Source: Haliotis cracherodii
Taxonomy: Eukaryota
DNA length: 64,000 nt
Direction of reading: 5' to 3'
Assembly (NCBI RefSeq): GCF_022045235.1
Contig: NW_027266308.1
Coordinates: forward strand, 13,888,001 to 13,952,000
The notes under the pieces are model-generated. The model was not told where the DNA came from. It worked only from the letters and a program-made list of their open reading frames with translations, and did not search any database. Positions within the stretch are counted from its first letter, which is position 1; each line of letters opens with the position of its first letter. Positions 17,957 through 64,000 of the stretch are shown one piece after another. A program made the translations under genes and the position numbers.

Positions 17957-18075
17957 TACATACATAGTATGACCTTGTTCAAATGTAAGTTGATCTGAAA
18001 CTTATTTGAACCATACAGTTCAAAACAACGCTAATCTTGCCAGACGTTTTCAATGTGCACTGTTTTCCCTTTCAG

Positions 18076-22427: not shown

Positions 22428-22726
22428 GTGAGGTGAAATGGGGTTTAACGTCGCGTCTAAGATTATTGCACTTATATAGCGACGTGCATGTACGTGTGTG
22501 TGTTTGTGTGGCTGCTTGTACTAGTCCGGACTGATGCCGATTTATAGTGCTAGCTCACTGAGATACCATGCCGCAATTTAACATGAATACCCAACTCAGA
22601 CACAGTATACTGACTCCGAGCCGGCCAGTCCTTGTTTTAGCCAGTCAGGGTAACAAAAAGTACCATCTTTAAACGTCTTTTGGCTCTCCAGGCGTACGCT
22701 CTACGACTAGACCACGGAGGCGGTCA
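22428..22726 (-). mobile_element. SINE at the left edge of the array
   Basis: Tail-like GTGAGGTGAAATGGGGTTTAACGTCGC and head GCTCTCCAGGCGTACGCTCTACGACTAGACCACGGAGGCGGTC resemble the in-unit SINE. The body differs. Confidence 0.7.
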
Positions 22727-23007
22727 GATACAATTGAAACATGTAGAACGATTCGTGTCATTATTGCGTGACTTTCATTTTATATATATTTCTTATATAT
22801 AAAATCGTGTTGTCTATATATTTGTAGGATCATGAACATGACTAGATAGCTATCGTGGGTCATCAGATCCCCACAAATGAACCTGTTATCTACATTTCAT
22901 GACATAACCGCGCACGGGAACATACATGTACGTCCCGCCTGCACCTGCTGTGCGCAGAATCACAACATCGTGACAGGGTTGGTGTTGGTATCATTTGAAA
23001 CAGAAAG

Positions 23008-23015
23008 TATATAAG
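23008..23015 (+). promoter_or_regulatory. TATA box of the array gene (present in every unit)
   Basis: TATATAAG 61 nt upstream of the ATG at 23069, implying a ~30 nt 5' UTR. Confidence 0.75.
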
Positions 23016-23068
23016 AGGATCAACCAAATGAAGACTTTACTTTGAAAGCTTTTCGCTTAACTCCAGAC

Positions 23069-25044
23069 ATGAAAGTAACACTGGTTCTCGTCATTGTCAG
23101 CACTATTATTGGTGAGTTGAAGATACTTAGGGCTTTTTATTAGTTAAGTTAGTGTCTACGTTAGCCGATGAGATTTGTTCTGTTCATGTTATTTTTATAA
23201 TGATAATAGTTCATATTATTCATAGATAATATTATTAATTTGCATTGCGCCTTTTTCCATGCTGGATATCAATGCGTTTTATTTCAGCTCCCTGGGCAAT
23301 ATATAACCTGATCTGCCTATGAGGCACTAGAAGACTAATTGTCACATAACCACCTCACCGAAAGGGGAACCCAATCTGAGTGAACAGAGGCATGTTTCGA
23401 ACAAAGGCACTAGCCTTTGGAAAACACCACATGTACTACTTGGGCTACAGTGTTGGGCAGGTCCAAGAAACTCTTAGGAAACAAAGCTGCCAAACACACT
23501 CAGCCATCCAATTGCTTTCTTCCACAAACTGTGCTTAAAGCCTTGACCTGTGACCTCCAAACAGGATCACGTGCCCCAACTTCTAATGAGATATTGTTTC
23601 TTTCGTTCAGCTGTGATCGACAGCGAGCCTTGCAGGGATGACAACGACTGTATCCACACGGTATGTGATAGTACCGGAAGGCTTGCCTGCTCTCATGACA
23701 TATGTACCTGTCTGGTTGCAGCCAATAGCTGCATCACAGGTAAGTCAGTTTACAAAATAGTGACCATAATAACAGCAGGCAACATATTTCATATGTGAAG
23801 GTTTTATTTAGGCATCTGGAAAGGTTCTCCTACAAGAAAAGGTGGTGACTATAAGTCAATAAACAAATTGGGTTTCACGCCGCTGATATAATATTTCAGA
23901 CAAATGTAGAAGGAACGACAAATATGATACAGAACTAAGATGATTACCATTTTGTTGAAACCATTGGCAATACAAAAAACCCAATCATGGCGAATCTGAG
24001 ATTCAAACCCACTACTAACGTAGCGTCAGCAAAACCCTTGCACAAAACTGCAAATAAGACATGCCCTTTAAATACAAGCCTGCATCAAATGAATGATGGA
24101 ATCTAGTTCAAACCTCTGACAAATGTTTTTGTCCTGTGTTGTTAAGAAGGAGGTTTATATTTCAGAAATTTGCAGAGACCGCCCTGACTGCGACACCTGC
24201 ATCTGTAGAGACACCCATGAAGAACACCACTGCTTCGACGGCCGCTGCCTATGTGGACGTATGGCACCTGTCGGCCCTGGTGGACCTGGCGGACCTGGCG
24301 TGTAAGTAACCATAATTACCGCCGGAGGTTGTCAGGCATAGTTTTGGTTGCTACACTTGAATCAGTTTGACGTTTCATTGGCTTTTTAATTACTGTCGAA
24401 AGAAAGTTGATGAATTTGTTTGCTTTTTCTGATTGTTTGGTTTTATGTCAGGGGCAAATGTCTAAATTTAGCCTGAATGTGATTTGGGACGTCAACGCTT
24501 TGATAGTGTTGGTTCAGAATGTTGGTGAAACACAATATTAGGAATATGATTTTAGTCGTGCATTTGTTGGTAAAACATACACTGTCGTCTTTGTATGGCA
24601 TGGATATTTGTCTCATCTCATTGCAGTGGTAATACTTAAATCATTCGACATATAGTAACACTATATCAGTCCTGTTTGTTTGTTTGTTTGTTTGTTGTTT
24701 AACGCCGCACTCAGCAATAGTCCAGCTATACGACGGCGGTTTATAGCAGTCCTATGCTATGTGTTTGGATATATGGTAAATAATGTAAATGTAAAACGTC
24801 GACGTTTAGCAATCAGTATCGATCATCTACCTAAACAGATTTCATTGGGCGTAAAAGGCAAAATTGCAGTGAAAATTATATGAATGGATCACTGAAAATT
24901 AATGATGACCCCAGGGGTTCGTTCCGCAAAACGATTGCCATCCACATCCATATTATAGTTCTTACTCCTATTCAATTTCTTACGAAATATTCAATTTTGA
25001 AAATGCCACTTTTCATCTACCTTTTTAATTTCAGAGGTAAATAA
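23069..25044 (+). CDS. Copy 1: secreted Cys-rich cvSI-2-like (I84-like) serine protease inhibitor, 105 aa; join(23069..23111,23611..23739,24166..24301,25035..25044)
   Basis: GT-AG introns (G|GTGAGT, TTCAG|, G|GTAAGT, TTTCAG|, GT|GTAAGT, TTTCAG|) keep one frame: MKVTLVLVIVSTIIAVIDSEPCRDDNDCIHTVCDSTGRLACSHDICTCLVAANSCITEICRDRPDCDTCICRDTHEEHHCFDGRCLCGRMAPVGPGGPGGPGVGK*. It has a signal peptide and two C-x5-C-x4-C-x7/8-C-x4-C-x-C modules. The family call is by Cys pattern; exon 4 is less certain than exons 1-3. Confidence 0.88.
24671..24740 (-). mobile_element. SINE 3' tail remnant with (TTTG)n in intron 3 (each unit)
   Basis: (TTTG)nTTGTTTAACGCCGCACTCAGCAATAGTCCAGCTATACGACGGCGGT matches the tails at 7450 and 25445. 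Confidence 0.8.
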
Positions 25045-25112
25045 ATCCTGAAAGGAGGAAAACCCATGGAAATTATTCCTACCTTGTTGGATACATACAT
25101 GTACACATGTGA

Positions 25113-25118
25113 AATAAA
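25113..25118 (+). terminator. Polyadenylation signal of the array gene (each unit)
   Basis: AATAAA ~70 nt after the exon-4 stop, followed ~20 nt later by GT-rich GGTTTGTTTTG. Confidence 0.65.
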
Positions 25119-25436
25119 CCTACTACTACCATTTACTGGTTTGTTTTGATGCTGAATATGTTTACTCTTATTGAATTGATGCGTTACCTGCTTATACCTA
25201 TGGAGAACATCCTGTGGTTATTCCGTGTTTCTAACCTATCCTCGTCAGATCAAGATACAATGTTCGGATCTGGATTGGCTAGATTTACGTGATGTCGATT
25301 TTCATACAGTCGCGACTCTCAAAGGGACGACATGTATTGGGTGGACAGGCCCGGTGGCTTAGTTGATTGATCAACCGATGATCTGTCTGCTTCATACTCG
25401 ACACATGCCCAAATAGTGTAAGTAAACCTTCGATTG

Positions 25437-25690
25437 GTAGGTTGGTTTGTTGTTTAACGCCGCACTCAGCATTATATCAGGTGTATGACGGCGGTCTGTA
25501 AATAATCGAGTCTGGACCAGACAATCCAGTGATTAACATCATAAGCATCGATCCACGCATTTGGGATCGATGACCTGCATCAAGTCAGCAAGCCTGACCA
25601 CCCGATCCCGTTAGTCGCCTTTTACGACAAGCATAGTCACCTTTTTACGGCAAGCATGGTTTGCTGAAGACCCCGGAATCTTCGCGGGAC
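25437..25690 (-). mobile_element. SINE body and tail in the intergenic spacer (each unit)
   Basis: Collinear with 7440-7683 and 2865-2935; contains GTTAGTCGCCTTTTACGACAAGCA. Confidence 0.8.
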
Positions 25691-25986
25691 TGAAAACCTT
25701 AGTGACAACATTGCTGGGATTCAAAAGATCGATTTCATGAACCTTGGCGTTTCGAAAATATTGTAAATAAAAGCGACAGAGGACAATTCCTTAATCAATG
25801 GAAATCTCTATTTAAAGTTTCCAACTAAATCATAAGGTTGTGTTTACGAGTGATGAAAGTGCAGCCGTTTCGTGAAAAATTATGTACTTTGTGGTGAAAA
25901 CATGAAACTTAGTACAGTCGTAGGTGATGACATTCGAAATAGTTAAAGATATGGGGCCACCCAAAAAATCCAACATGGCCTCCTTA

Positions 25987-26614: not shown

Positions 26615-28594
26615 ATGAAAGTAACACTGGTTCTCGTCATTGTCAGCACTATTATTGGTGAGTTGAAGATACTTATGGCTTTTTATTAGTTAAGTTAGTG
26701 TCTACGTTAGCCGATGAGATTTGTTCTGTTCATGTTATTTTTATAATGATAATAGTTCATATTATTCATAGATAATATTATTAATTTGCATTGCGCCTTT
26801 TTCCATGCTGGATATCAATGCGTTTTATTTCAGCTCCCTGGACAATATATAACCTGATCTGCCTATGAGGCACTAGAAGACTAATTGTCACATAACCACC
26901 TCACCGAAAGGGGAACCCAATCTGAGTGAACAGAGGCATGTTTCGAACAAAGGCACTAGCCTTTGGAAAACACCACATGTACTACTTGGGCTACAGTGTT
27001 GGGCAGGTCCAAGAAACTCTTAGGAAACAAAGCTGCCAAACACGTTCAGCCATCCAATTGCTTTCTTCCACAAACTGTGCTTAAAGCCTTGACCTGTGAC
27101 CTCCAAACAGGATCACGTGCCCCAACTTCTAATGAGATATTGTTTCTTTCGTTCAGCTGTGATCGACAGCGAGCCTTGCAGGGATGACAACGACTGTATC
27201 CACACGGTATGTGATAGTACCGGAAGGCTTGCCTGCTCTCATGACATATGTACCTGTCTGGTTGCAGCCAATAGCTGCATCACAGGTAAGTCAGTTTACA
27301 AAATAGTGACCATAATAACTGCAGGCAACATATTTCATATGTGAAGGTTTTATTTAGGCATCTGGAAAGGTTCTCCTACAAGAAAAGGTGGTGACTATAA
27401 GTCAATAAACAAATTGGGTTTCACGCCGCTGATATAATATTTCAGACAAATGTAGAAGGAACGACAAATATGATACAGAACTAAGATGATTACCATTTTG
27501 TTGAAACCATTGGCAATACAAAAAACACAATCATGGCGAATCTGTGATTCAAACCCACTACTAACGTAGCGTCAGCAAAACCCTTGCACAAAACTGCAAA
27601 TAAGACATGCCCTTTAAATACAAGCCTGCATCAAATGAATGATGGAATCTAGTTCAAACCTCTGACAAATGTTTTTGTCCTGTGTTGTTAAGAAGGAGGT
27701 TTATATTTCAGAAACTTGCAGAGACCGCCCTGACTGCGACACCTGCATCTGTAGAGACACCCATGAAGAACACCACTGCTTCGACGGCCGCTGCCTATGT
27801 GGACGTATGGCACCTGTCGGCCCTGGTGGACCTGGCGGACCTGGCGTGTAAGTAACCATAATTACCGCCGGAGGTTGTCAGGCATAGTTTTGGTTGCTAC
27901 ACTTGAATCAGTTTGACGTTTCATTGGCTTTTTAATTACTGTCGAAAGAAAGTTGATGAATTTGTTTGCTTTTTCTGATTGTTTGGTTTTATGTCAGGGG
28001 CAAATGTCTAAATTTAGCCTGAATGTGATTTGGGACGTCAACGCTTTGATAGTGTTGGTTCAGAATGTTGGTGAAACACAATATTAGGAATATGATTTTA
28101 GTCGTGCATTTGTTGGTAAAACATACACAGTCGTCTTTGTATGGCATGGGTATTTGTCTCATCTCATTGCAGTGGTAATACTTAAATCATTCGACATATA
28201 GTAACACTATATCAGTCCTGTTTGTTTGTTTGTTTGTTTGTTTGTTGTTTAACGCCGCACTCAGCAATAGTCCAGCTATACGACGGCGGTTTATAGCAGT
28301 CCTATGCTATGTGTTTGGATATATGGTAAATAATGTAAATGTGAAACGTCGACGTTTAGCAATCAGTATCGATCATCTACCTAAACAGATTTCATTGGGC
28401 GTAAAAGGCAAAATTGCAGTGAAAATTATATGAATGGATCACTGAAAATTAATGATGACCCCAGGGGTTCGTTCCGCAAAACGATTGCCATCCACATCCA
28501 TATTATAGTTCTTACTCCAATTCAATTTCTTACGAAATATTCAATTTTGAAAATGCCACTTTTCATCTACCTTTTTAATTTCAGAGGTAAATAA
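26615..28594 (+). CDS. Copy 2 cvSI-2-like inhibitor; join(26615..26657,27157..27285,27712..27847,28585..28594)
   Basis: Same structure as copy 1; Thr59. Confidence 0.87.
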
Positions 28595-30144
28595 ATCCTG
28601 AAAGGAGGAAAACCCATGGAAATTATTCCTACCTTGTTGGATACATACATGTACACATGTGAAATAAACCTACTACTACCATTTACTGGTTTGTTTTGAT
28701 GCTGAATATGTTTACTCTTATTGAATTGATGCGTTACCTGCTTATACCTATGGAGAACATCCTGTGGTTATTCCGTGTTTCTAACCTATCCTCGTCAGAT
28801 CAAGATACAATGTTCGGATCTGGATTGGCTAGATTTACGTGATGTCGATTTTCATACAGTCGCGACTCTCAAAGGGACGACATGTATTGGGTGGACAGGC
28901 CCGGTGGCTTAGTTGATTGATCAACCGATGATCTGTCTGCTTCATACTCGACACATGCCCAAATGGTGTAAGTAAACCTTCGATTGGTAGGTTGGTTTGT
29001 TGTTTAACGCCGCACTCAGCATTATATCAGGTGTATGACGGCGGTCTGTAAATAATCGAGTCTGGACCAGACAATCCAGTGATTAACATCATAAGCATCG
29101 ATCCACGCATTTGGGATCGATGACCTGCATCAAGTCAGCAAGCCTGACCACCCGATCCCGTTAGTCGCCTTTTACGACAAGCATAGTCACCTTTTTACGG
29201 CAAGCATGGTTTGCTGAAGACCCCGGAATCTTCGCGGGACTGAAAACCTTAGTGACAACATTGCTGGGATACAAAAGATCGATTTCATGAACCTTGGCGT
29301 TTCGAAAATATTGTAAATAAAAGCGACAGAGGACAATTCCTTAATCAATGGAAATCTCTATTTAAAGTTTCCAACTAAATCATAAGGTTGTGTTTACGAG
29401 TGATGAAAGTGCAGCCGTTTCGTGAAAAATTATGTACTTTGTGGTGAAAACATGAAACTTAGTACAGTCGTAGGTGATGACATTCGAAATAGTTAAAGAT
29501 ATGGGGCCACCCAAAAAATCCAACATGGCCTCCTTAGAGTGAGTGAGTGAGTGAGTGAGTTGGGTTTAACGCCGCTTTTAACATTATTCCAGTTATATCA
29601 CGGCGTGTCAGCTTAATGTGGGAGGAAAGCCCGAAGTGATGCAGGTCTCAGACGTTTACCACTTCTGTGAAACCCACGAGCACGGGTATGGTGCTGACAA
29701 TAGACGCGGCCGGGGATCGAACCCCGGACCTTCCGCTCTCCGGGCCGACGCTCTACGAATAGACCACGGAGGCGGTCAGATACAATTGAAACATGTAGAA
29801 AAAATCGTGTAATTATTGCGTGACTTTCTTTTTATATATATACACGATTGCCATCCTTGCCATTTCTTATATATAAAATCGTGTTGTCTATATATTTGTA
29901 GGACCATGAACATGACTAGATAGCTATCGTGGGTCATCAGATCCCCACAAATGAACCTGTTATCTACATTTCATGACATAACCGCGCACGGGAACATTAG
30001 TCCTGCGTGCACCTGCTGTGCGCAGAATCACAACATCGTGACTGGCTGACAGGGTTGGTGTTGGTATCATTTGAAACAGAAAGTATATAAGAGGATCAAC
30101 CAAATGAAGACTTTACTTTGAAAGCTTTTCGCTTAACTCCAGAC

Positions 30145-32124
30145 ATGAAAGTAACACTGGTTCTCGTCATTGTCAGCACTATTATTGGTGAGTTGAAGAT
30201 ACTTATGGCTTTTTATTAGTTAAGTCAGTGTCTACGTTAGCCGATGAGATTTGTTCTGTTCATGTTATTTTTATAATGATAATAGTTCATATTATTCATA
30301 GATAATATTATTAATTTGCATTGCGCCTTTTTCCATGCTGGATATCAATGCGTTTTATTTCAGCTCCCTGGACAATATATAACCTGATCTGCCTATGAGG
30401 CACTAGAAGACTAATTGTCACATAACCACCTCACCGAAAGGGGAACCCAATCTGAGTGAACAGAGGCATGTTTTGAACAAAGGCACTAGCCTTTGGAAAA
30501 CACCACATGTACTACTTGGGCTACAGTGTTGGGCAGGTCCAAGAAACTCTTAGGAAACAAAGCTGCCAAACACGTTCAGCCATCCAATTGCTTTCTTCCA
30601 CAAACTGTGCTTAAAGCCTTGACCTGTGACCTCCAAACAGGATCACGTGCCCCAACTTCTAATGAGATATTGTTTCTTTCGTTCAGCTGTGATCGACAGC
30701 GAGCCTTGCAGGGATGACAACGACTGTATCCACACGGTATGTGATAGTACCGGAAGGCTTGCCTGCTCTCATGACATATGTACCTGTCTGGTTGCAGCCA
30801 ATAGCTGCATCACAGGTAAGTCAGTTTACAAAATAGTGACCATAATAACTGCAGGCAACATATTTCATATGTGAAGGTTTTATTTAGGCATCTGGAAAGG
30901 TTCTCCTACAAGAAAAGGTGGTGACTATAAGTCAATAAACAAATTGGGTTTCACGCCGCTGATATAATATTTCAGACAAATGTAGAAGGAACGACAAATA
31001 TGATACAGAACTAAGATGATTACCATTTTGTTGAAACCATTGGCAATACAAAAAACCCAATCATGGCGAATCTGTGATTCAAACCCACTACTAACGTAGC
31101 GTCAGCAAAACCCTTGCACAAAACTGCAAATAAGACATGCCCTTTAAATACAAGCCTGCATCAAATGAATGATGGAATCTAGTTCAAACCTCTGACAAAT
31201 GTTTTTGTCCTGTGTTGTTAAGAAGGAGGTTTATATTTCAGAAATTTGCAGAGACCGCCCTGACTGCGACACCTGCATCTGTAGAGACACCCATGAAGAA
31301 CACCACTGCTTCGACGGCCGCTGCCTATGTGGACGTATGGCACCTGTTGGCCCTGGTGGACCTGGCGGACCTGGCGTGTAAGTAACCATAATTACCGCCG
31401 GAGGTTGTCAGGCATAGTTTTGGTTGCTACACTTGAATCAGTTTGACGTTTCATTGGCTTTTTAATTACTGTCGAAAGAAAGTTGATGAATTTGTTTGCT
31501 TTTTCTGATTGTTTGGTTTTATGTCAGGGGCAAATGTCTAAATTTAGCCTGAATGTGATTTGGGACGTCAACGCTTTGATAGTGTTGGTTCAGAATGTTG
31601 GTGAAACACAATATTAGGAATATGATTTTAGTCGTGCATTTGTTGGTAAAACATACACAGTCGTCTTTGTATGGCATGGGTATTTGTCTCATCTCATTGC
31701 AGTGGTAATACTTAAATCATTCGACATATAGTAACACTATATCAGTCCTGTTTGTTTGTTTGTTTGTTTGTTTGTTGTTTAACGCCGCACTCAGCAATAG
31801 TCCAGCTATACGACGGCGGTTTATAGCAGTCCTATGCTATGTGTTTGGATATATGGTAAATAATGTAAATGTAAAACGTCGACGTTTAGCAATCAGTATC
31901 GATCATCTACCTAAACAGATTTCATTGGGCGTAAAAGGCAAAATTGCAGTGAAAATTATATGAATGGATCACTGAAAATTAATGATGACCCCAGGGGTTC
32001 GTTCCGCAAAACGATTGCCATCCACATCCATATTATAGTTCTTACTCCAATTCAATTTCTTACGAAATATTCAATTTTGAAAATGCCACTTTTCATCTAC
32101 CTTTTTAATTTCAGAGGTAAATAA
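30145..32124 (+). CDS. Copy 3; join(30145..30187,30687..30815,31242..31377,32115..32124)
   Basis: Same structure; Ile59; silent GTC>GTT in exon 3. Confidence 0.87.
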
Positions 32125-33696
32125 ATCCTGAAAGGAGGAAAACCCATGGAAATTATTCCTACCTTGTTGGATACATACATGTACACATGTGAAATAAACC
32201 TACTACTACCATTTACTGGTTTGTTTTGATGCTGAATATGTTTACTCTTATTGAATTGATGCGTTACCTGCTTATACCTATGGAGAACATCCTGTGGTTA
32301 TTCCGTGTTTCTAACCTATCCTCGTCAGATCAAGATACAATGTTCGGATCTGGATTGGCTAGATTTACGTGATGTCGATTTTCATACAGTCGCGACTCTC
32401 AAAGGGACGACATGTATTGGGTGGACAGGCCCGGTGGCTTAGTTGATTGATCAACCGATGATCTGTCTGCTTCATACTCGACACATGCCCAAATGGTGTA
32501 AGTAAACCTTCGATTGGTAGGTTGGTTTGTTGTTTAACGCCGCACTCAGCATTATATCAGGTGTATGACGGCGGTCTGTAAATAATCGAGTCTGGACCAG
32601 ACAATCCAGTGATTAACATCATAAGCATCGATCCACGCATTTGGGATCGATGACCTGCATCAAGTCAGCAAGCCTGACCACCCGATCCCGTTAGTCGCCT
32701 TTTACGACAAGCATAGTCACCTTTTTACGGCAAGCATGGTTTGCTGAAGACCCCGGAATCTTCGCGGGACTGAAAACCTTAGTGACAACATTGCTGGGAT
32801 ACAAAAGATCGATTTCATGAACCTTGGCGTTTCGAAAATATTGTAAATAAAAGCGACAGAGGACAATTCCTTAATCAATGGAAATCTCTATTTAAAGTTT
32901 CCAACTAAATCATAAGGTTGTGTTTACGAGTGATGAAAGTGCAGCCGTTTCGTGAAAAATTATGTACTTTGTGGTGAAAACATGAAACTTAGTACAGTCG
33001 TAGGTGATGACATTCGAAATAGTTAAAGATATGGGGCCACCCAAAAAATCCAACATGGCCTCCTTAGAGTGAGTGAGTGAGTGAGTGAGTGAGTGAGTGA
33101 GTGAGTTGGGTTTAACGCCGCTTTTAACATTATTCCAGTTATATCACGGCGTGTCAGCTTAATGTGGGAGGAAAGCCCGAAGTGATGCAGGTCTCAGACG
33201 TTTACCACTTCTGTGAAACCCACGAGCACGGGTATGGTGCTGACAATAGACGCGGCCGGGGATCGAACCCCGGACCTTCCGCTCTCCGGGCCGACGCTCT
33301 ACGAATAGACCACGGAGGCGGTCAGATACAATTGAAACATGTAGAAAAAATCGTGTAATTATTGCGTGACTTTCTTTTTATATATATACACGATTGCCAT
33401 CCTTGCCATTTCTTATATATAAAATCGTGTTGTCTATATATTTGTAGGACCATGAACATGACTAGATAGCTATCGTGGGTCATCAGATCCCCACAAATGA
33501 ACCTGTTATCTACATTTCATGACATAACCGCGCACGGGAACATACATGTACGTCCCGCCTGCACCTGCTGTGCGCAGAATCACAACATCGTGACTGGCTG
33601 ACAGGGTTGGTGTTGGTATCATTTGAAACAGAAAGTATATAAGAGGATCAACCAAATGAAGACTTTACTTTGAAAGCTTTTCGCTTAACTCCAGAC

Positions 33697-35668
33697 ATGA
33701 AAGTAACACTGGTTCTCGTCATTGTCAGCACTATTATTGGTGAGTTGAAGATACTTATGGCTTTTTATTTGTTAAGTTAGTGTCTACGTTAGCCGATGAG
33801 ATTTGTTCTGTTCATGTTATTTTTATAATGATAATAGTTCATATTATTCATAGATAATATTATTAATTTGCATTGCGCCTTTTTCCATGCTGGATATCAA
33901 TGCGTTTTATTTCAGCTCCCTGGGCAATATATAACCTGATCTGCCTATGAGGCACTAGAAGACTAATTGTCACATAACCACCTCACCGAAAGGGGAACCC
34001 AATCTGAGTGAACAGAGGCATGTTTCGAACAAAGGCACTAGCCTTTGGAAAACACCACATGTACTACTTGGGCTACAGTGTTGGGCAGGTCCAAGAAACT
34101 CTTAGGAAACAAAGCTGCCAAACACGCTCAGCCATCCAATTGCTTTCTTCCACAAACTGTGCTTAAAGCCTTGACCTGTGACCTCCAAACAGGATCACGT
34201 GCCCCAACTTCTAATGAGATATTGTTTCTTTCGTTCAGCTGTGATCGACAGCGAGCCTTGCAGGGATGACAACGACTGTATCCACACGGTATGTGATAGT
34301 ACCGGAAGGCTTGCCTGCTCTCATGACATATGTACCTGTCTGGTTGCAGCCAATAGCTGCATCACAGGTAAGTCAGTTTACAAAATAGTGACCATAATAA
34401 CTGCAGGCAACATATTTCATATGTGAAGGTTTTATTTAGGCATCTGGAAAGGTTCTCCTACAAGAAAAGGTGGTGACTATAAGTCAATAAACAAATTGGG
34501 TTTCACGCCGCTGATATAATATTTCAGACAAATGTAGAAGGAACGACAAATATGATACAGAACTAAGATGATTACCATTTTGTTGAAACCATTGGCAATA
34601 CAAAAAACACAATCATGGCGAATCTGTGATTCAAACCCACTACTAACGTAGCGTCAGCAAAACCCTTGCACAAAACTGCAAATAAGACATGCCCTTTAAA
34701 TACAAGCCTGCATCAAATGAATGATGGAATCTAGTTCAAACCTCTGACAAATGTTTTTGTCCTGTGTTGTTAAGAAGGAGGTTTATATTTCAGAAACTTG
34801 CAGAGACCGCCCTGACTGCGACACCTGCATCTGTAGAGACACCCATGAAGAACACCACTGCTTCGACGGCCGCTGCCTATGTGGACGTATGGCACCTGTC
34901 GGCCCTGGTGGACCTGGCGGACCTGGCGTGTAAGTAACCATAATTACCGCCGGAGGTTGTCAGGCATAGTTTTGGTTGCTACACTTGAATCAGTTTGACG
35001 TTTCATTGGCTTTTTAATTACTGTCGAAAGAAAGTTGATGAATTTGTTTGCTTTTTCTGATTGTTTGGTTTTATGTCAGGGGCAAATGTCTAAATTTAGC
35101 CTGAATGTGATTTGGGACGTCAACGCTTTGATAGTGTTGGTTCAGAATGTTGGTGAAACACAATATTAGGAATATGATTTTAGTCGTGCATTTGTTGGTA
35201 AAACATACACAGTCGTCTTTGTATGGCATGGGTATTTGTCTCATCTCATTGCAGTGGTAATACTTAAATCATTCGACATATAGTAACACTATATCAGTCC
35301 TGTTTGTTTGTTTGTTTGTTGTTTAACGCCGCACTCAGCAATAGTCTAGCTATACGACGGCGGTTTATAGCAGTCCTATGCTATGTGTTTGGATATATGG
35401 TAAATAATGTAAATGTAAAACGTCGACGTTTAGCAATCAGTATCGATCATCTACCTAAACAGATTTCATTGGGCGTAAAAGGCAAAATTGCAGTGAAAAT
35501 TATATGAATGGATCACTGAAAATTAATGATGACCCCAGGGGTTCGTTCCGCAAAACGATTGCCATCCACATCCATATTATAGTTCTTACTCCAATTCAAT
35601 TTCTTACGAAATATTCAATTTTGAAAATGCCACTTTTCATCTACCTTTTTAATTTCAGAGGTAAATAA
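33697..35668 (+). CDS. Copy 4; join(33697..33739,34239..34367,34794..34929,35659..35668)
   Basis: Same structure; Thr59. Confidence 0.87.
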
Positions 35669-47867: not shown

Positions 47868-49847
47868 ATGAAAGTAACACTGGTTCTCGTCATTGTCAGC
47901 ACTATTATTGGTGAGTTGAAGATACTTAGGGCTTTTTATTAGTTAAGTTAGTGTCTACGTTAGCCGATGAGATTTGTTCTGTTCATGTTATTTTTATAAT
48001 GATAATAGTTCATATTATTCATAGATAATATTATTAATTTGCATTGCGCCTTTTTCCATGCTGGATATCAATGCGTTTTATTTCAGCTCCCTGGGCAATA
48101 TATAACCTGATCTGCCTATGAGGCACTAGAAGACTAATTGTCACATAACCACCTCACCGAAAGGGGAACCCAATCTGAGTGAACAGAGGCATGTTTCGAA
48201 CAAAGGCACTAGCCTTTGGAAAACACCACATGTACTACTTGGGCTACAGTGTTGGGCAGGTCCAAGAAACTCTTAGGAAACAAAGCTGCCAAACACGCTC
48301 AGCCATCCAATTGCTTTCTTCCACAAACTGTGCTTAACGCCTTGACCTGTGACCTCCAAACAGGATCACGTGCCCCAACTTCTAATGAGATATTGTTTCT
48401 TTCGTTCAGCTGTGATCGACAGCGAGCCTTGCAGGGATGACAACGACTGTATCCACACGGTATGTGATAGTACCGGAAGGCTTGCCTGCTCTCATGACAT
48501 ATGTACCTGTCTGGTTGCAGCCAATAGCTGCATCACAGGTAAGTCAGTTTACAAAATAGTGACCATAATAACTGCAGGCAACATATTTCATATGTGAAGG
48601 TTTTATTTAGGCATCTGGAAAGGTTCTCCTACAAGAAAAGGTGGTGACTATAAGTCAATAAACAAATTGGGTTTCACGCCGCTGATATAATATTTCAGAC
48701 AAATGTAGAAGGAACGACAAATATGATACAGAACTAAGATGATTACCATTTTGTTGAAACCATTGGCAATACAAAAAACACAATCATGGCGAATCTGTGA
48801 TTCAAACCCACTACTAACGTAGCGTCAGCAAAACCCTTGCACAAAACTGCAAATAAGACATGCCCTTTAAATACAAGCCTGCATCAAATGAATGATGGAA
48901 TCTAGTTCAAACCTCTGACAAATGTTTTTGTCCTGTGTTGTTAAGAAGGAGGTTTATATTTCAGAAACTTGCAGAGACCGCCCTGACTGCGACACCTGCA
49001 TCTGTAGAGACACCCATGAAGAACACCACTGCTTCGACGGCCGCTGCCTATGTGGACGTATGGCACCTGTCGGCCCTGGTGGACCTGGCGGACCTGGCGT
49101 GTAAGTAACCATAATTACCGCCGGAGGTTGTCAGGCATAGTTTTGGTTGCTACACTTGAATCAGTTTGACGTTTCATTGGCTTTTTAATTACTGTCGAAA
49201 GAAAGTTGATGAATTTGTTTGCTTTTTCTGATTGTTTGGTTTTATGTCAGGGGCAAATGTCTAAATTTAGCCTGAATGTGATTTGGGACGTCAACGCTTT
49301 GATAGTGTTGGTTCAGAATGTTGGTGAAACACAATATTAGGAATATGATTTTAGTCGTGCATTTGTTGGTAAAACATACACAGTCGTCTTTGTATGGCAT
49401 GGATATTTGTCTCATCTCATTGCAGTGGTAATACTTAAATCATTCGACATATAGTAACACTATATCAGTCCTGTTTGTTTGTTTGTTTGTTTGTTTGTTG
49501 TTTAACGCCGCACTCAGCAATAGTCCAGCTATACGACGGCGGTTTATAGCAGTCCTATGCTATGTGTTTGGATATATGGTAAATAATGTAAATGTAAAAC
49601 GTCGACGTTTAGCAATCAGTATCGATCATCTACCTAAACAGATTTCATTGGGCGTAAAAGGCAAAATTGCAGTGAAAATTATATGAATGGATCACTGAAA
49701 ATTAATGATGACCCCAGGGGTTCGTTCCGCAAAACGATTGCCATCCACATCCATATTATAGTTCTTACTCCAATTCAATTTCTTACGAAATATTCAATTT
49801 TGAAAATGCCACTTTTCATCTACCTTTTTAATTTCAGAGGTAAATAA
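47868..49847 (+). CDS. Copy 8; join(47868..47910,48410..48538,48965..49100,49838..49847)
   Basis: Same structure. Confidence 0.87.
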
Positions 49848-51417: not shown

Positions 51418-53399
51418 ATGAAAGTAACACTGGTTCTCGTCATTGTCAGCACTATTATTGGTGAGTTGAAGATACTTAGGGCTTTTTATTAGTTAAGTTA
51501 GTGTCTACGTTAGCCGATGAGATTTGTTCTGTTCATGTTATTTTTATAATGATAATAGTTCATATTATTCATAGATAATATTATTAATTTGCATTGCGCC
51601 TTTTTCCATGCTGGATATCAATGCGTTTTATTTCAGCTCCCTGGGCAATATATAACCTGATCTGCCTATGAGGCACTAGAAGACTAATTGTCACATAACC
51701 ACCTCACCGAAAGGGGAACCCAATCTGAGTGAACAGAGGCATGTTTCGAACAAAGGCACTAGCCTTTGGAAAACACCACATGTACTACTTGGGCTACAGT
51801 GTTGGGCAGGTCCAAGAAACTCTTAGGAAAAAAAAAGCTGCCAAACACGCTCAGCCATCCAATTGCTTTCTTCCACAAACTGTGCTTAAAGCCTTGACCT
51901 GTGACCTCCAAACAGGATCACGTGCCCCAACTTCTAATGAGATATTGTTTCTTTCGTTCAGCTGTGATCGACAGCGAGCCTTGCAGGGATGACAACGACT
52001 GTATCCACACGGTATGTGATAGTACCGGAAGGCTTGCCTGCTCTCATGACATATGTACCTGTCTGGTTGCAGCCAATAGCTGCATCACAGGTAAGTCAGT
52101 TTACAAAATAGTGACCATAATAACTGCAGGCAACATATTTCATATGTGAAGGTTTTATTTAGGCATCTGGAAAGGTTCTCCTACAAGAAAAGGTGGTGAC
52201 TATAAGTCAATAAACAAATTGGGTTTCACGCCGCTGATATAATATTTCAGACAAATGTAGAAGGAACGACAAATATGATACAGAACTAAGATGATTACCA
52301 TTTTGTTGAAACCATTGGCAATACAAAAAACACAATCATGGCGAATCTGAGATTCAAACCCACTACTAACGTAGCGTCAGCAAAACCCTTGCACAAAACT
52401 GCAAATAAGACATGCCCTTTAAATACAAGCCTGCATCAAATGAATGATGGAATCTAGTTCAAACCTCTGACAAATGTTTTTGTCCTGTGTTGTTAAGAAG
52501 GAGGTTTATATTGCAGAAACTTGCAGAGACCGCCCTGACTGCGACACCTGCATCTGTAGAGACACCCATGAAGAACACCACTGCTTCGACGGCCGCTGCC
52601 TATGTGGACGTATGGCACCTGTCGGCCCTGGTGGACCTGGCGGACCTGGCGTGTAAGTAACCATAATTACCGCCGGAGGTTGTCAGGCATAGTTTTGGTT
52701 GCTACACTTGAATCAGTTTGACGTTTCATTGGCTTTTTAATTACTGTCGAAAGAAAGTTGATGAATTTGTTTGCTTTTTCTGATTGTTTGGTTTTATGTC
52801 AGGGGCAAATGTCTAAATTTAGCCTGAATGTGATTTGGGACGTCAACGCTTTGATAGTGTTGGTTCAGAATGTTGGTGAAACACAATATTAGGAATATGA
52901 TTTTAGTCGTGCATTTGTTGGTAAAACATACACAGTCGTCTTTGTATGGCATGGATATTTGTCTCATCTCATTGCAGTGGTAATACTTAAATCATTCGAC
53001 ATATAGTAACACTATATCAGTCCTGTTTGTTTGTTTGTTTGTTTGTTTGTTGTTTAACGCCGCACTCAGCAATAGTCCAGCTATACGACGGCGGTTTATA
53101 GCAGTCCTATGCTATGTGTTTGGATATATGGTAAATAATGTAAATGTAAAACGTCGACTTTTAGCAATCAGTATCGATCATCTACCTAAACAGATTTCAT
53201 TGGGCGTAAAAGGCAAAATTGCAGTGAAAATTATATGAATGGATCACTGAAAATTAATGATGACCCCAGGGGTTCGTTCCGCAAAACGATTGCCATCCAC
53301 ATCCATATTATAGTTCTTACTCCAATTCAATTTCTTACGAAATATTCAATTTTGAAAATGCCACTTTTCATCTACCTTTTTAATTTCAGAGGTAAATAA
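51418..53399 (+). CDS. Copy 9; join(51418..51460,51962..52090,52517..52652,53390..53399)
   Basis: Same structure; intron 1 is 2 nt longer (A-run); intron 2 acceptor is TTGCAG instead of TTTCAG. Confidence 0.87.
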
Positions 53400-54965: not shown

Positions 54966-56945
54966 ATGAAAGTAACACTGGTTCTCGTCATTGTCAGCAC
55001 TATTATTGGTGAGTTGAAGATACTTAGGGCTTTTTATTAGTTAAGTTAGTGTCTACGTTAGCCGATGAGATTTGTTCTGTTCATGTTATTTTTATAATGA
55101 TAATAGTTCATATTATTCATAGATAATATTATTAATTTGCATTGCGCCTTTTTCCATGCTGGATATCAATGCGTTTTATTTCAGCTCCCTGGGCAATATA
55201 TAACCTGATCTGCCTATGAGGCACTAGAAGACTAATTGTCACATAACCACCTCACCGAAAGGGGAACCCAATCTGAGTGAACAGAGGCATGTTTCGAACA
55301 AAGGCACTAGCCTTTGGAAAACACCACATGTACTACTTGGGCTACAGTGTTGGGCAGGTCCAAGAAACTCTTAGGAAACAAAGCTGCCAAACACGCTCAG
55401 CCATCCAATTGCTTTCTTCCACAAACTGTGCTTAAAGCCTTGACCTGTGACCTCCAAACAGGATCACGTGCCCCAACTTCTAATGAGATATTGTTTCTTT
55501 CGTTCAGCTGTGATCGACAGCGAGCCTTGCAGGGATGACAACGACTGTATCCACACGGTATGTGATAGTACCGGAAGGCTTGCCTGCTCTCATGACATAT
55601 GTACCTGTCTGGTTGCAGCCAATAGCTGCATCACAGGTAAGTCAGTTTACAAAATAGTGACCATAATAACTGCAGGCAACATATTTCATATGTGAAGGTT
55701 TTATTTAGGCATCTGGAAAGGTTCTCCTACAAGAAAAGGTGGTGACTATAAGTCAATAAACAAATTGGGTTTCACGCCGCTGATATAATATTTCAGACAA
55801 ATGTAGAAGGAACGACAAATATGATACAGAACTAAGATGATTACCATTTTGTTGAAACCATTGGCAATACAAAAAACACAATCATGGCGAATCTGTGATT
55901 CAAACCCACTACTAACGTAGCGTCAGCAAAACCCTTGCACAAAACTGCAAATAAGACATGCCCTTTAAATACAAGCCTGCATCAAATGAATGATGGAATC
56001 TAGTTCAAACCTCTGACAAATGTTTTTGTCCTGTGTTGTTAAGAAGGAGGTTTATATTTCAGAAACTTGCAGAGACCGCCCTGACTGCGACACCTGCATC
56101 TGTAGAGACACCCATGAAGAACACCACTGCTTCGACGGCCGCTGCCTATGTGGACGTATGGCACCTGTCGGCCCTGGTGGACCTGGCGGACCTGGCGTGT
56201 AAGTAACCATAATTACCGCCGGAGGTTGTCAGGCATAGTTTTGGTTGCTACACTTGAATCAGTTTGACGTTTCATTGGCTTTTTAATTACTGTCGAAAGA
56301 AAGTTGATGAATTTGTTTGCTTTTTCTGATTGTTTGGTTTTATGTCAGGGGCAAATGTCTAAATTTAGCCTGAATGTGATTTGGGACGTCAACGCTTTGA
56401 TAGTGTTGGTTCAGAATGTTGGTGAAACACAATATTAGGAATATGATTTTAGTCGTGCATTTGTTGGTAAAACATACACAGTCGTCTTTGTATGGCATGG
56501 ATATTTGTCTCATCTCATTGCAGTGGTAATACTTAAATCATTCGACATATAGTAACACTATATCAGTCCTGTTTGTTTGTTTGTTTGTTTGTTTGTTGTT
56601 TAACGCCGCACTCAGCAATAGTCCAGCTATACGACGGCGGTTTATAGCAGTCCTATGCTATGTGTTTGGATATATGGTAAATAATGTAAATGTAAAACGT
56701 CGACTTTTAGCAATCAGTATCGATCATCTACCTAAACAGATTTCATTGGGCGTAAAAGGCAAAATTGCAGTGAAAATTATATGAATGGATCACTGAAAAT
56801 TAATGATGACCCCAGGGGTTCGTTCCGCAAAACGATTGCCATCCACATCCATATTATAGTTCTTACTCCAATTCAATTTCTTACGAAATATTCAATTTTG
56901 AAAATGCCACTTTTCATCTACCTTTTTAATTTCAGAGGTAAATAA
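54966..56945 (+). CDS. Copy 10; join(54966..55008,55508..55636,56063..56198,56936..56945)
   Basis: Same structure. Confidence 0.87.
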
Positions 56946-58506: not shown

Positions 58507-60486
58507 ATGAAAGTAACACTGGTTCTCGTCATTGTCAGCACTATTATTGGTGAGTTGAAGATACTTAGGGCTTTTTATTAGTTAAGTTAGTGTCTACGTT
58601 AGCCGATGAGATTTGTTCTGTTCATGTTATTTTTATAATGATAATAGTTCATATTATTCATAGATAATATTATTAATTTGCATTGCGCCTTTTTCCATGC
58701 TGGATATCAATGCGTTTTATTTCAGCTCCCTGGGCAATATATAACCTGATCTGCCTATGAGGCACTAGAAGACTAATTGTCACATAACCACCTCACCGAA
58801 AGGGGAACCCAATCTGAGTGAACAGAGGCATGTTTCGAACAAAGGCACTAGCCTTTGGAAAACACCACATGTACTACTTGGGCTACAGTGTTGGGCAGGT
58901 CCAAGAAACTCTTAGGAAACAAAGCTGCCAAACACGCTCAGCCATCCAATTGCTTTCTTCCACAAACTGTGCTTAACGCCTTGACCTGTGACCTCCAAAC
59001 AGGATCACGTGCCCCAACTTCTAATGAGATATTGTTTCTTTCGTTCAGCTGTGATCGACAGCGAGCCTTGCAGGGATGACAACGACTGTATCCACACGGT
59101 ATGTGATAGTACCGGAAGGCTTGCCTGCTCTCATGACATATGTACCTGTCTGGTTGCAGCCAATAGCTGCATCACAGGTAAGTCAGTTTACAAAATAGTG
59201 ACCATAATAACTGCAGGCAACATATTTCATATGTGAAGGTTTTATTTAGGCATCTGGAAAGGTTCTCCTACAAGAAAAGGTGGTGACTATAAGTCAATAA
59301 ACAAATTGGGTTTCACGCCGCTGATATAATATTTCAGACAAATGTAGAAGGAACGACAAATATGATACAGAACTAAGATGATTACCATTTTGTTGAAACC
59401 ATTGGCAATACAAAAAACACAATCATGGCGAATCTGTGATTCAAACCCACTACTAACGTAGCGTCAGCAAAACCCTTGCACAAAACTGCAAATAAGACAT
59501 GCCCTTTAAATACAAGCCTGCATCAAATGAATGATGGAATCTAGTTCAAACCTCTGACAAATGTTTTTGTCCTGTGTTGTTAAGAAGGAGGTTTATATTT
59601 CAGAAACTTGCAGAGACCGCCCTGACTGCGACACCTGCATCTGTAGAGACACCCATGAAGAACACCACTGCTTCGACGGCCGCTGCCTATGTGGACGTAT
59701 GGCACCTGTCGGCCCTGGTGGACCTGGCGGACCTGGCGTGTAAGTAACCATAATTACCGCCGGAGGTTGTCAGGCATAGTTTTGGTTGCTACACTTGAAT
59801 CAGTTTGACGTTTCATTGGCTTTTTAATTACTGTCGAAAGAAAGTTGATGAATTTGTTTGCTTTTTCTGATTGTTTGGTTTTATGTCAGGGGCAAATGTC
59901 TAAATTTAGCCTGAATGTGATTTGGGACGTCAACGCTTTGATAGTGTTGGTTCAGAATGTTGGTGAAACACAATATTAGGAATATGATTTTAGTCGTGCA
60001 TTTGTTGGTAAAACATACACAGTCGTCTTTGTATGGCATGGATATTTGTCTCATCTCATTGCAGTGGTAATACTTAAATCATTCGACATATAGTAACACT
60101 ATATCAGTCCTGTTTGTTTGTTTGTTTGTTTGTTTGTTGTTTAACGCCGCACTCAGCAATAGTCCAGCTATACGACGGCGGTTTATAGCAGTCCTATGCT
60201 ATGTGTTTGGATATATGGTAAATAATGTAAATGTAAAACGTCGACGTTTAGCAATCAGTATCGATCATCTACCTAAACAGATTTCATTGGGCGTAAAAGG
60301 CAAAATTGCAGTGAAAATTATATGAATGGATCACTGAAAATTAATGATGACCCCAGGGGTTCGTTCCGCAAAACGATTGCCATCCACATCCATATTATAG
60401 TTCTTACTCCAATTCAATTTCTTACGAAATATTCAATTTTGAAAATGCCACTTTTCATCTACCTTTTTAATTTCAGAGGTAAATAA
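58507..60486 (+). CDS. Copy 11; join(58507..58549,59049..59177,59604..59739,60477..60486)
   Basis: Same structure. Confidence 0.87.
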
Positions 60487-62047
60487 ATCCTGAAAGGAGG
60501 AAAACCCATGGAAATTATTCCTACCTTGTTGGATACATACATGTACACATGTGAAATAAACCTACTACTACCATTTACTGGTTTGTTTTGATGCTGAATA
60601 TGTTTACTCTTATTGAATTGATGCGTTACCTGCTTATACCTATGGAGAACATCCTGTGGTTATTCCGTGTTTCTAACCTATCCTCGTCAGATCAAGATAC
60701 AATGTTCGGATCTGGATTGGCTAGATTTACGTGATGTCGATTTTCATACAGTCGCGACTCTCAAAGGGACGACATGTATTGGGTGGACAGGCCCGGTGGC
60801 TTAGTTGATTGATCAACCGATGATCTGTCTGCTTCATACTCGACACATGCCCAAATGGTGTAAGTAAACCTTCGATTGGTAGGTTGGTTTGTTGTTAACG
60901 CCGCACTCAGCATTATATCAGGTGTATGACGGCGGTCTGTAAATAATCGAGTCTGGACCAGACAATCCAGTGATTAACATCATAAGCATCGATCCACGCA
61001 TTTGGGATCGATGACCTGCATCAAGTCAGCAAGCCTGACCACCCGATCCCGTTAGTCGCCTTTTACGACAAGCATAGTCACCTTTTTACGGCAAGCATGG
61101 TTTGCTGAAGACCCCGGAATCTTCGCGGGACTGAAAACCTTAGTGACAACATTGCTGGGATACAAAAGATCGATTTCATGAACCTTGGCGTTTCGAAAAT
61201 ATTGTAAATAAAAGCGACAGAGGACAATTCCTTAATCAATGGAAATCTCTATTTAAAGTTTCCAACTAAATCATAAGGTTGTGTTTACGAGTGATGAAAG
61301 TGCAGCCGTTTCGTGAAAAATTATGTACTTTGTGGTGAAAACATGAAACTTAGTACAGTCGTAGGTGATGACATTCGAAATAGTTAAAGATATGGGGCCA
61401 CCCAAAAAATCCAACATGGCCTCCTTAGAGTGAGTGAGTGAGTGAGTGAGTGAGTGAGTGAGTTGGGTTTAACGCCGCTTTTAACATTATTCCAGTTATA
61501 TCACGGCGTGTCAGCTTAATGTGGGAGGAAAGCCCGAAGTGATGCAGGTCTCAGACGTTTACCACTTCTGTGAAACCCACGAGCACGGGTATGGTGCTGA
61601 CAATAGACGCGGCCGGGGATCGAACCCCGGACCTTCCGCTCTCCGGGCCGACGCTCTACGAATAGACCACGGAGGCGGTCAGATACAATTGAAACATGTA
61701 GAAAAAATCGTGTAATTATTGCGTGACTTTCTTTTTATATATATACACGATTGCCATCCTTGCCATTTCTTATATATAAAATCGTGTTGTCTATATATTT
61801 GTAGGACCATGAACATGACTAGATAGCTATCGTGGGTCATCAGATCCCCACAAATGAACCTGTTATCTACATTTCATGACATAACCGCGCACGGGAACAT
61901 TAGTCCTGCGTGCACCTGCTGTGCGCAGAATCACAACATCGTGACTGGCTGACAGGGTTGGTGTTGGTATCATTTGAAACAGAAAGTATATAAGAGGATC
62001 AACCAAATGAAGACTTTACTTTGAAAGCTTTTCGCTTAACTCCAGAC

Positions 62048-63280
62048 ATGAAAGTAACACTGGTTCTCGTCATTGTCAGCACTATTATTGGTGAGTTGAA
62101 GATACTTAGGGCTTTTTATTAGTTAAGTTAGTGTCTACGTTAGCCGATGAGATTTGTTCTGTTCATGTTATTTTTATAATGATAATAGTTCATATTATTC
62201 ATAGATAATATTATTAATTTGCATTGCGCCTTTTTCCATGCTGGATATCAATGCGTTTTATTTCAGCTCCCTGGGCAATATATAACCTGATCTGCCTATG
62301 AGGCACTAGAAGACTAATTGTCACATAACCACCTCACCGAAAGGGGAACCCAATCTGAGTGAACAGAGGCATGTTTCGAACAAAGGCACTAGCCTTTGGA
62401 AAACACCACATGTACTACTTGGGCTACAGTGTTGGGCAGGTCCAAGAAACTCTTAGGAAACAAAGCTGCCAAACACGCTCAGCCATCCAATTGCTTTCTT
62501 CCACAAACTGTGCTTAAAGCCTTGACCTGTGACCTCCAAACAGGATCACGTGCCCCAACTTCTAATGAGATATTGTTTCTTTCGTTCAGCTGTGATCGAC
62601 AGCGAGCCTTGCAGGGATGACAACGACTGTATCCACACGGTATGTGATAGTACCGGAAGGCTTGCCTGCTCTCATGACATATGTACCTGTCTGGTTGCAG
62701 CCAATAGCTGCATCACAGGTAAGTCAGTTTACAAAATAGTGACCATAATAACTGCAGGCAACATATTTCATATGTGAAGGTTTTATTTAGGCATCTGGAA
62801 AGGTTCTCCTACAAGAAAAGGTGGTGACTATAAGTCAATAAACAAATTGGGTTTCACGCCGCTGATATAATATTTCAGACAAATGTAGAAGGAACGACAA
62901 ATATGATACAGAACTAAGATGATTACCATTTTGTTGAAACCATTGGCAATACAAAAAACACAATCATGGCGAATCTGTGATTCAAACCCACTACTAACGT
63001 AGCGTCAGCAAAACCCTTGCACAAAACTGCAAATAAGACATGCCCTTTAAATACAAGCCTGCATCAAATGAATGATGGAATCTAGTTCAAACCTCTGACA
63101 AATGTTTTTGTCCTGTGTTGTTAAGAAGGAGGTTTATATTTCAGAAACTTGCAGAGACCGCCCTGACTGCGACACCTGCATCTGTAGAGACACCCATGAA
63201 GAACACCACTGCTTCGACGGCCGCTGCCTATGTGGACGTATGGCACCTGTCGGCCCTGGTGGACCTGGCGGACCTGGCGT
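62048..63280 (+). CDS. Copy 12 (partial; exon 4 falls just beyond the window); join(62048..62090,62590..62718,63145..63280)
   Basis: Same structure; the window ends just before the intron-3 acceptor. Confidence 0.85.
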
Positions 63281-64000
63281 GTAAGTAACCATAATTACCG
63301 CCGGAGGTTGTCAGGCATAGTTTTGGTTGCTACACTTGAATCAGTTTGACGTTTCATTGGCTTTTTAATTACTGTCGAAAGAAAGTTGATGAATTTGTTT
63401 GCTTTTTCTGATTGTTTGGTTTTATGTCAGGGGCAAATGTCTAAATTTAGCCTGAATGTGATTTGGGACGTCAACGCTTTGATAGTGTTGGTTCAGAATG
63501 TTGGTGAAACACAATATTAGGAATATGATTTTAGTCGTGCATTTGTTGGTAAAACATACACAGTCGTCTTTGTATGGCATGGATATTTGTCTCATCTCAT
63601 TGCAGTGGTAATACTTAAATCATTCGACATATAGTAACACTATATCAGTCCTGTTTGTTTGTTTGTTTGTTTGTTGTTTAACGCCGCACTCAGCAATAGT
63701 CCAGCTATACGACGGCGGTTTATAGCAGTCCTATGCTATGTGTTTGGATATATGGTAAATAAGGTAAATGTAAAACGTCGACGTTTAGCAATCAGTATCG
63801 ATCATCTACCTAAACAGATTTCATTGGGCGTAAAAGGCAAAATTGCAGTGAAAATTATATGAATGGATCACTGAAAATTAATGATGACCCCAGGGGTTCG
63901 TTCCGCAAAACGATTGCCATCCACATCCATATTATAGTTCTTACTCCAATTCAATTTCTTACGAAATATTCAATTTTGAAAATGCCACTTTTCATCTACC

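Follow-up and report, generated by a model that had tools for sequence, protein, structure and literature searches.

Why would a genome carry more than a dozen nearly identical copies of one small secreted-peptide gene, and is so long an array a property of the species or of a single assembly? The question is raised by a 64,000-nucleotide stretch of the genome of the black abalone, Haliotis cracherodii (RefSeq assembly GCF_022045235.1, contig NW_027266308.1; in our notation C45:13888001-13952000, hereafter the window), in which a first-pass annotation made from the letters alone had described a very recent tandem amplification of a hidden four-exon gene for a secreted cysteine-rich inhibitor of the kind known from oysters as MEROPS family I84. 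Our joint reading, to which we give a probability of roughly 70%, is that an I84 gene was amplified into an array by unequal exchange between short interspersed nuclear elements (SINEs), that the array raises the dose of an inhibitor of pathogen proteases, and that array length varies between animals.

We delimited the array by self-BLAST, since Tandem Repeats Finder, with a longest period of 500 that lies below the unit length, did not report it. A central 4-kb probe gave 12 successive plus-strand matches, from 22683/22933 to 64000, at 98.9-99.5% identity and a spacing of 3530-3552 bp, so that the predicted ~3.54-kb units were borne out as 11.7 head-to-tail units running to the end of the window. 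The array extends ~6.9 kb further, giving 14 gene copies in the assembly, 12 of which start inside the window, and a protein search of the whole 1.18-Gb assembly (80 contigs) likewise found exon 2 in 14 occurrences at ~3.54-kb spacing. Aligned with MAFFT, full units differ pairwise by 0-26 substitutions (0.0-0.7%), most of the other difference being microsatellite length. Units 7 and 10 have no substitutions between them, nor have units 8 and 11, and a higher-order repeat relates positions 43937-54579 to 54580-64000 through exact matches of 4327 and 2068 bp offset by three units, indicating that a three-unit block was duplicated last, and very recently. Microsatellite lengths differ even within these substitution-identical pairs. 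The 14th and last copy carries a frame-broken long interspersed nuclear element (LINE) of ~4.8 kb inside intron 3, with exon 4 beyond the insertion; the element has endonuclease and reverse-transcriptase open reading frames on the minus strand (L005:6950-10000 and L006:1-1740, together C45:13958950-13963740). On the right the array ends in a mosaic of unit fragments. A second LINE reverse-transcriptase open reading frame lies at L006:2271-3971.

Little of this sequence varies from unit to unit. All 12 visible copies are open reading frames, and their amino-acid differences are limited to the two already noted, L5P in unit 5, and I/T59 with isoleucine in units 1 and 3; the remaining two exonic changes are synonymous. 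Introns and SINEs proved as homogeneous as exons, with variable sites at 0.9% in exons, 1.3% in introns and ~1.5% in spacers. Because exons are no more uniform than introns or spacers, the uniformity reflects youth or homogenization rather than constraint. Sequencing runs of two related organisms contained 0.43-0.45 of the 31-mers of the unit, which by our own calculation corresponds to roughly 97.5% identity. Set against this ~2.5% divergence between related species, the 0.0-0.7% between units places the amplification, or the last homogenization, after those splits and agrees with the recent date first proposed.

Each unit holds every part listed by the first-pass annotation: a TATA box, a signal-peptide exon, two cysteine-rich exons, a terminal exon and a polyadenylation signal (Table 1; the reference unit is 30001-33552). 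The module in exon 2 has the pattern C-x5-C-x4-C-x7-C-x4-C-T-C, and the donor of exon 3, GTAAGT, overlaps an in-frame TAA. Transcripts using the predicted junctions were found in two runs that behave as RNA, X15, which has the organism label of the window, and X16, from a related organism. Word depth was 4,500-119,000 on the four exon bins versus 0-450 in most intron bins. In copy 1, RNA joints connect 23111>23611 and 23739>24166, both GT..AG, and a third joint, 24301>25035, connects the end of exon 3 to exon 4; all three predicted GT..AG introns are thus joined in RNA contigs from two runs, and loose contig ends at 23111 and 23610 spell the adjoining exon. In X15 the third joint looks shifted (24291>25035, one letter intervening), since the dominant transcript there is one 9-nucleotide GGP repeat shorter than copy 1, and the X16 joint (24300>25035, with C between) puts the donor at the predicted GTAAGT. 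Over exon 4 of copy 1, RNA depth is high in the bin 25031-25227 and near zero in the next. X15 depth is 0 in the intron 3 bin adjoining the exon 3 donor, which indicates that read-through is rare and that the Gly-Lys end encoded by exon 4 is the main form. It is a genuine gene that is spliced in the predicted way and strongly transcribed.

The four-exon model also agrees with an existing database entry. In a word-based protein search with exon 2 as query (open stretch 30623-30871, region 22-64), the sole protein returned was P0001, a RefSeq "uncharacterized protein" of H. cracherodii with several accession numbers, whose 105 residues are identical letter for letter to the predicted product in its T59 form. 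The gene is therefore not hidden, as had been supposed, since RefSeq already annotates exactly this product. Exon 2 was searched by reference, and full-length queries used P0001 itself rather than a joined splice product. Clustered at 90%, P0001 falls in a group of 19 sequences, among them red abalone proteins to which RefSeq gives the name "serine protease inhibitor Cvsi-2-like". When P0001 was compared exhaustively with 1.84 billion representatives by phmmer, 15 matches reached E<=1e-3, and the named ones are all from molluscs (abalone, oyster, Mya, Dreissena, Saccostrea and Mactra), mostly as Cvsi-2-like. Among them, P0018 (E 7.5e-8, 42% identity) belongs to a cluster that holds Crassostrea virginica cvSI-3 (AQM52281) and a C. 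gigas Cvsi-2-like protein.

The family alignment points the same way. All 12 family cysteines align and are invariant or at least 90% conserved (C22, C28, C33, C41, C46 and C48; C60, C66, C71, C80, C85 and C87), T47 stands between C46 and C48, H79 directly precedes C80, and a hydrophobic signal, conserved throughout the family, forms the N-terminus. Razor clam I84 genes encode the motifs C-x5-C, C-x7-C-x4-C-T-C and C-x4-C-x-C, give each module its own exon and have phase-1 introns (PMC9198434), and the abalone motifs, layout and introns agree with these published features. Exons 1-3, with the signal peptide divided between the first two, and both of their phase-1 introns fit the three-exon layout of the family, and an extra intron before the last three codons brings the number of exons to four. 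Sequence similarity, cysteine framework, gene structure and taxon thus all support assigning the product to I84, a family of small secreted inhibitors confined to molluscs; the similarity of the 105-residue product to I84 proteins was obtained with the identical RefSeq protein, and the original family call stands.

The predicted product is a 105-residue precursor in which a signal peptide would be followed by two disulfide-rich modules, each encoded by its own exon, then by a Gly-Pro tail and a final Gly-Lys. Its mature peptide has 14 cysteines in total, of which two (C55 and C69) are common to the Haliotis relatives P0016 and P0017 and absent in bivalves, and which likely form a seventh disulfide. 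Neither the Gly-Pro tail nor the Gly-Lys end is unusual for the family: GPGGPGG tails occur in Mya, Mactra and other members, and several members end in GK or GRK. Amidation is usually signalled by a C-terminal glycine with a basic residue after it, and the Gly-Lys end would probably leave an amidated valine.

The array does not stand alone. About six further sites, on both strands of C45:13.80-14.05 Mb, contain the unit together with the 3.2 kb that precede the array, at 86-94% identity. Each of these sites carries a paralog with the same four exons, and most of these older paralogs are accompanied by a second, more distant I84 type. A relic of the second type lies in the ancestral flank of the array and is about 44-46% identical to P0017; intact-looking counterparts stand beside older paralogs elsewhere in the cluster. 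In the protein search of the whole assembly, the cluster comprised more than 30 I84-type genes or relics in ~280 kb, with further members out to 14.08 Mb. Compared with the array, the older paralogs are 97-100% identical in exons 1 and 4 and 86-95% identical in exons 2 and 3. The mature region differs from paralogs L001 and L003 at 22-23 of 73 residues with all 14 cysteines kept, and non-synonymous change amounts to 14.6-15.4% per site versus 4.6-6.4% in the three introns (L001 and L003; Fisher p 1.6e-6 and 8e-5). Amino-acid change in the older paralogs is thus about three times faster than intron change, and the ratio of non-synonymous to synonymous change (dN/dS) between the two paralog subgroups is 1.6-4.2, a pattern that would be the signature of diversifying change in the mature peptide. 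The earlier contrast of a dosage array with a diversifying cluster is therefore overdrawn, as the array is embedded among older paralogs whose mature-peptide exons change faster than their introns. Diversification and dosage amplification coexist at this locus.

Tail length among the paralogs ranges from two to four GGP repeats. One paralog (L002:2453-2588, minus strand, C45:~13831450) has an in-frame TGA within the Gly-Pro tail, five codons ahead of the normal stop, and its product would have a shortened tail lacking Gly-Lys. More I84-like exons, on contig C12 (C12:33574071-33580959 and C12:1150623), form a small second cluster.

How the array arose is suggested by its edges. Array homology begins in the last ~50 bp (the head) of the SINE at the left edge, and this head is shared with the SINE that closes every unit. 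The two are different copies of one family, and depth and loose ends mark both as high-copy. The SINE-type repeat inside each unit has genome-wide matches at unit positions 2514-2775 and a DNA-read depth hundreds of times that of the flank. ARAGORN found no tRNA in the SINEs. An array junction that falls in a SINE head suggests unequal crossing-over. In the simplest history, the ancestral arrangement would have been flank, SINE, promoter, gene and SINE, as kept in the roughly six older paralogs nearby. From this anatomy we infer that the first duplicate came from unequal crossing-over between the heads of the two flanking SINEs; further unequal exchange between units would then have led to 14 copies, including the recent duplication of a three-unit block. 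The older paralogs would have diversified their mature peptides, and the array would raise the dose of one variant, presumably to the animal's benefit.

The flank contains other repeats as well. A remnant of a Tc1/mariner-type transposase lies at 16756-17721 (plus strand), and the duplicated flank contains a mariner-like helix-turn-helix/transposase fragment in copies at 1807-2358 (plus strand) and 19607-19933 (minus strand). A dispersed repeat, present many times in the genome at 80-84% identity, makes up the first ~750 bp of 19500-22682.

Several observations weigh against the joint reading, and those on read depth bear on array length. X21 and X22 are Illumina DNA runs from 2026 with the same species label, from which about 1 read in 100 was sampled (~1.6x coverage). 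With repeats avoided, mean depth over the flank 20500-22272 was ~1.3 in X22 and ~0.65 in X21, and over non-SINE unit bins ~4.4 and ~0.9, giving unit/flank ratios of ~3.4 (X22) and ~1.4 (X21) versus the 14 expected for a homozygous assembled array. The X22 counts are small (roughly 14 versus 68 reads) and the ratios rough, yet 14x is excluded for both animals. SINE depth was four times lower in X21 than in X22 at equal letters read, which implies less abalone DNA per sampled read and makes the X21 ratio less reliable than that of X22. At position 23498, a base private to unit 1 was present in 2 of 6 X22 reads versus about 1 in 14 expected, which fits few copies. These low ratios suggest that the long array is not general and may in part be a product of assembly, in the strongest form a short array of 2-4 units over-expanded by the assembler, to which the substitution-identical unit pairs 7/10 and 8/11 would also conform. 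We regard that explanation as unlikely. The contig is chromosome-scale, the two runs may come from other animals and only 1% of each was read, and red abalone also has several consecutively numbered loci for the same 90% cluster. Private and shared substitutions are distributed among units with a neighbour-like structure and microsatellites differ even between substitution-identical units, and on these grounds we rejected a plain assembly duplicate as the main reading and favour strong variation in array length between animals over over-extension by the assembler. The earlier count of at least 12 copies is thus right for this assembly, with its 14, and does not extend to the species in general. 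Copy number appears to vary between individuals, as predicted, the depths of ~1.4x and 3.4x being well below 14x. Another run, X10, contains 69% of the sampled 31-mers of the unit in 9 million letters; it may come from a targeted library or from an animal with a very high copy number.

The uniformity of the units could also come from ongoing concerted evolution, with gene conversion acting on an old array that sister species share. The consecutively numbered red abalone loci LOC125384279-84284 encode identical or near-identical proteins of the P0001 90% cluster, and 25-45% of the unit 31-mers occur in RNA and DNA runs from two related organisms. An older array kept uniform by conversion is thus possible, and we give it a minority share of the probability: the substitution-free duplication of a three-unit block implies a very recent expansion, animals of one species seem to have strongly different copy numbers, and spacers and SINEs are as uniform as exons. 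Conversion bears on the older paralogs in another way, as their fast exons could have received sequence from a more distant donor by conversion limited to exons. The RNA evidence is qualified as well. The GGP repeat at 24292-24300, present in the window copies, is missing from the dominant X15 spliced contig, which matches the 102-residue type of an upstream inverted paralog (L004) and of the 14th copy, so the RNA is not assignable to array copies rather than to near-identical paralogs.

The remaining points concern function. Passages of PMC9198434 cite work in which purified cvSI-1 inhibits subtilisin and perkinsin, and in which cvSI-1 and cvSI-2 inhibit subtilisin and the Perkinsus protease. 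Homology to these characterized inhibitors makes the abalone product a likely secreted tight-binding inhibitor of pathogen subtilisin-type proteases. Set against this, the literature searched held no biochemical data on abalone I84 members, Pfam has no I84 model and gave P0001 no meaningful match, and an AlphaFold2 model from a 29-sequence alignment was weak (predicted local distance difference test, pLDDT, 64.7; a short helix and a beta-hairpin per module), with no match at E<=0.001 and no solved inhibitor matched when compared with the Protein Data Bank (PDB) by Foldseek.

The peptide might instead act mainly as an amidated defensin-like antimicrobial or signalling peptide despite its I84 homology. 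The cysteine spacing of the exon 2 module is identical to that of the solved NCR13 peptide, one of the plant NCR/defensin-like peptides (weak match, E 0.19), and 15 of 29 mollusc I84 proteins match the plant late-nodulin Pfam family PF07127 (Nodulin_late) at E<=1, the best at 1.2e-5. I84 and the late-nodulin profile share the spacing C-x5-C-x4-C-x7-C-x4-C-x-C, for which convergence and deep kinship are both possible. The best Foldseek rows for the weak model were the pea defensin Psd1 and K+ channel toxins (E 2-5), that is, cysteine-stabilized alpha-beta (CS-alpha-beta) defensins and scorpion toxins, so that a defensin- or scorpion-toxin-like fold is a lead only. A conserved signal exon, a fast-changing mature peptide and a Gly-Lys amidation signal, all seen here, are together typical of antimicrobial peptides and toxins. 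We nevertheless consider this account improbable. All such matches fall below significance for P0001 itself, which has no match to PF07127 and resembles the late-nodulin/NCR family in cysteine spacing only; the mature peptide reads as acidic to neutral rather than strongly cationic; and the characterized relatives, cvSI-1 and cvSI-2, are the inhibitors described above.

Other candidates from the domain and structure searches were set aside. Pfam hits to single exons and P0001 (EGF_BRNP, E 2.9; HROB, E 0.24) were noise; in the PDB sequence search, NCR13 (exon 2) and Nup153 zinc fingers (E 0.85) were taken as chance cysteine patterns; the EB module PF01683 matched 5 of 29 relatives (best E 0.035) and not P0001; and ESM Atlas scores of at most 0.81, to plant nodulin/defensin-like, EB and CC domains, lay below its reliability line.

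Table 1. Features of the array, its reference unit and its flank (window coordinates).
Feature	Position	Strand	Description	Evidence
Tandem array	22683..64000	+	11.7 units in window	Self-BLAST, alignment
Gene copy 1	23069..25044	+	ATG to stop; I59 form	
Gene copy 2	26615..28594	+		
Gene copy 3	30145..32124	+	Reference unit; I59 form	
Gene copy 4	33697..35668	+		
Gene copy 5	37241..39212	+	L5P in signal peptide	
Gene copy 6	40781..42760	+	Synonymous I9 change	
Gene copy 7	44323..46306	+	Unit without substitutions versus unit 10	
Gene copy 8	47868..49847	+	Unit without substitutions versus unit 11	
Gene copy 9	51418..53399	+	T>G in pyrimidine tract before exon 3; AG acceptor intact	
Gene copy 10	54966..56945	+		
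Gene copy 11	58507..60486	+		
Gene copy 12	62048..64000	+	Exons 1-3 in window; exon 4 is 14 nucleotides past window end	
TATA box	30084..30090	+	TATATAA, 60 nucleotides upstream of ATG; intact in 12/12 units	
Exon 1, coding part	30145..30187	+	43 nucleotides including ATG; signal peptide MKVTLVLVIVSTII plus 1 nucleotide; phase-1 donor GTGAGT	
Exon 2	30687..30815	+	129 nucleotides; end of signal peptide, first 6-Cys module, one extra Cys	
Exon 3	31242..31377	+	136 nucleotides; second module (6 canonical Cys and 1 extra), His-rich loop, (GPG)n tail	
Exon 4	32115..32215	+	Completes Val, then Gly-Lys-stop (32115-32124); 3' untranslated region; AATAAA 32195-32200	
SINE at array left edge	22426..22682	.		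Alignment; SINE-level read depth, loose ends 22426/22642
Interspersed SINE-type repeat in each unit	32501..32894	.	Approximate; reference unit	Genome-wide matches
(GAGT)n microsatellite and unit-closing SINE	33060..33310	.	SINE head is the unit junction	
Second-type I84 relic	18057..18329	+	Ancestral flank; exon-2-like stretch with in-frame stop, Cys to Arg	

The black abalone is an endangered species that has been hard hit by infectious disease. A highly transcribed I84 gene with few to 14 copies between animals offers a locus that can be genotyped, at which effector dosage can be tested against disease outcome. At one site, one family would also illustrate two evolutionary modes, diversification of the mature peptide followed by SINE-mediated amplification of one variant. 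Were array length found to segregate under selection, this would become a candidate resistance locus in a disease-collapsed species; we hold it a long shot that array length is a segregating polymorphism (~1-3 to 14 copies) that sets circulating inhibitor dose and is under recent selection by a pathogen whose protease the amplified variant would block. In oysters and clams, resistance to parasites and Vibrio has been linked to I84 inhibitors (PMC9198434).

The family itself is known, its tandem expansion has been reported in a clam and RefSeq annotates the gene; the locus presents no new mechanism or family. What is new is an array of 14 near-identical units whose junction is bounded by a SINE, evidence that copy number differs greatly between animals, and the coexistence of such an array with fast-diverging paralogs. 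With the MEROPS I84 cvSI-type inhibitors the abalone product shares a signal peptide followed by two 6-Cys modules, the module 1 spacing already given, a module 2 that ends in H-C-x-D-G-x-C-x-C, one module per exon, phase-1 introns and the match to the cvSI-3 cluster; it differs in its two additional cysteines, in a fourth mini-exon for the last three codons and in a longer Gly-Pro tail. Within the genus, Haliotis rufescens has Cvsi-2-like proteins in the same 90% cluster as the array product, the Cvsi-2-like protein of H. rubra, P0016, is 63% identical to it, and H. discus hannai has hdhSI-1/2.

Beyond the family, the human beta-defensin cluster at 8p23.1 and AMY1 are copy-number-variable tandem arrays of secreted effector genes. 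By analogy, they resemble the abalone array in their near-identical units, unequal crossing-over, copy-number differences between individuals and presumed dosage effect, and differ from it in belonging to unrelated protein families and another host, the abalone array having no known phenotype association. Close in both family and mode is Sinonovacula constricta, a razor clam in which scSI-1 to scSI-14 form tandem-duplicated clusters of ~100 kb that have diverged in sequence and expression (PMC9198434). Expansion of the family by tandem duplication is common to both. The clam duplicates, however, have three exons and have diverged as paralogs, with 88% similarity in one example (PMC9198434), whereas by substitutions the 14 abalone units are 99.3-100% identical even across introns and spacers, and their number apparently varies between animals.

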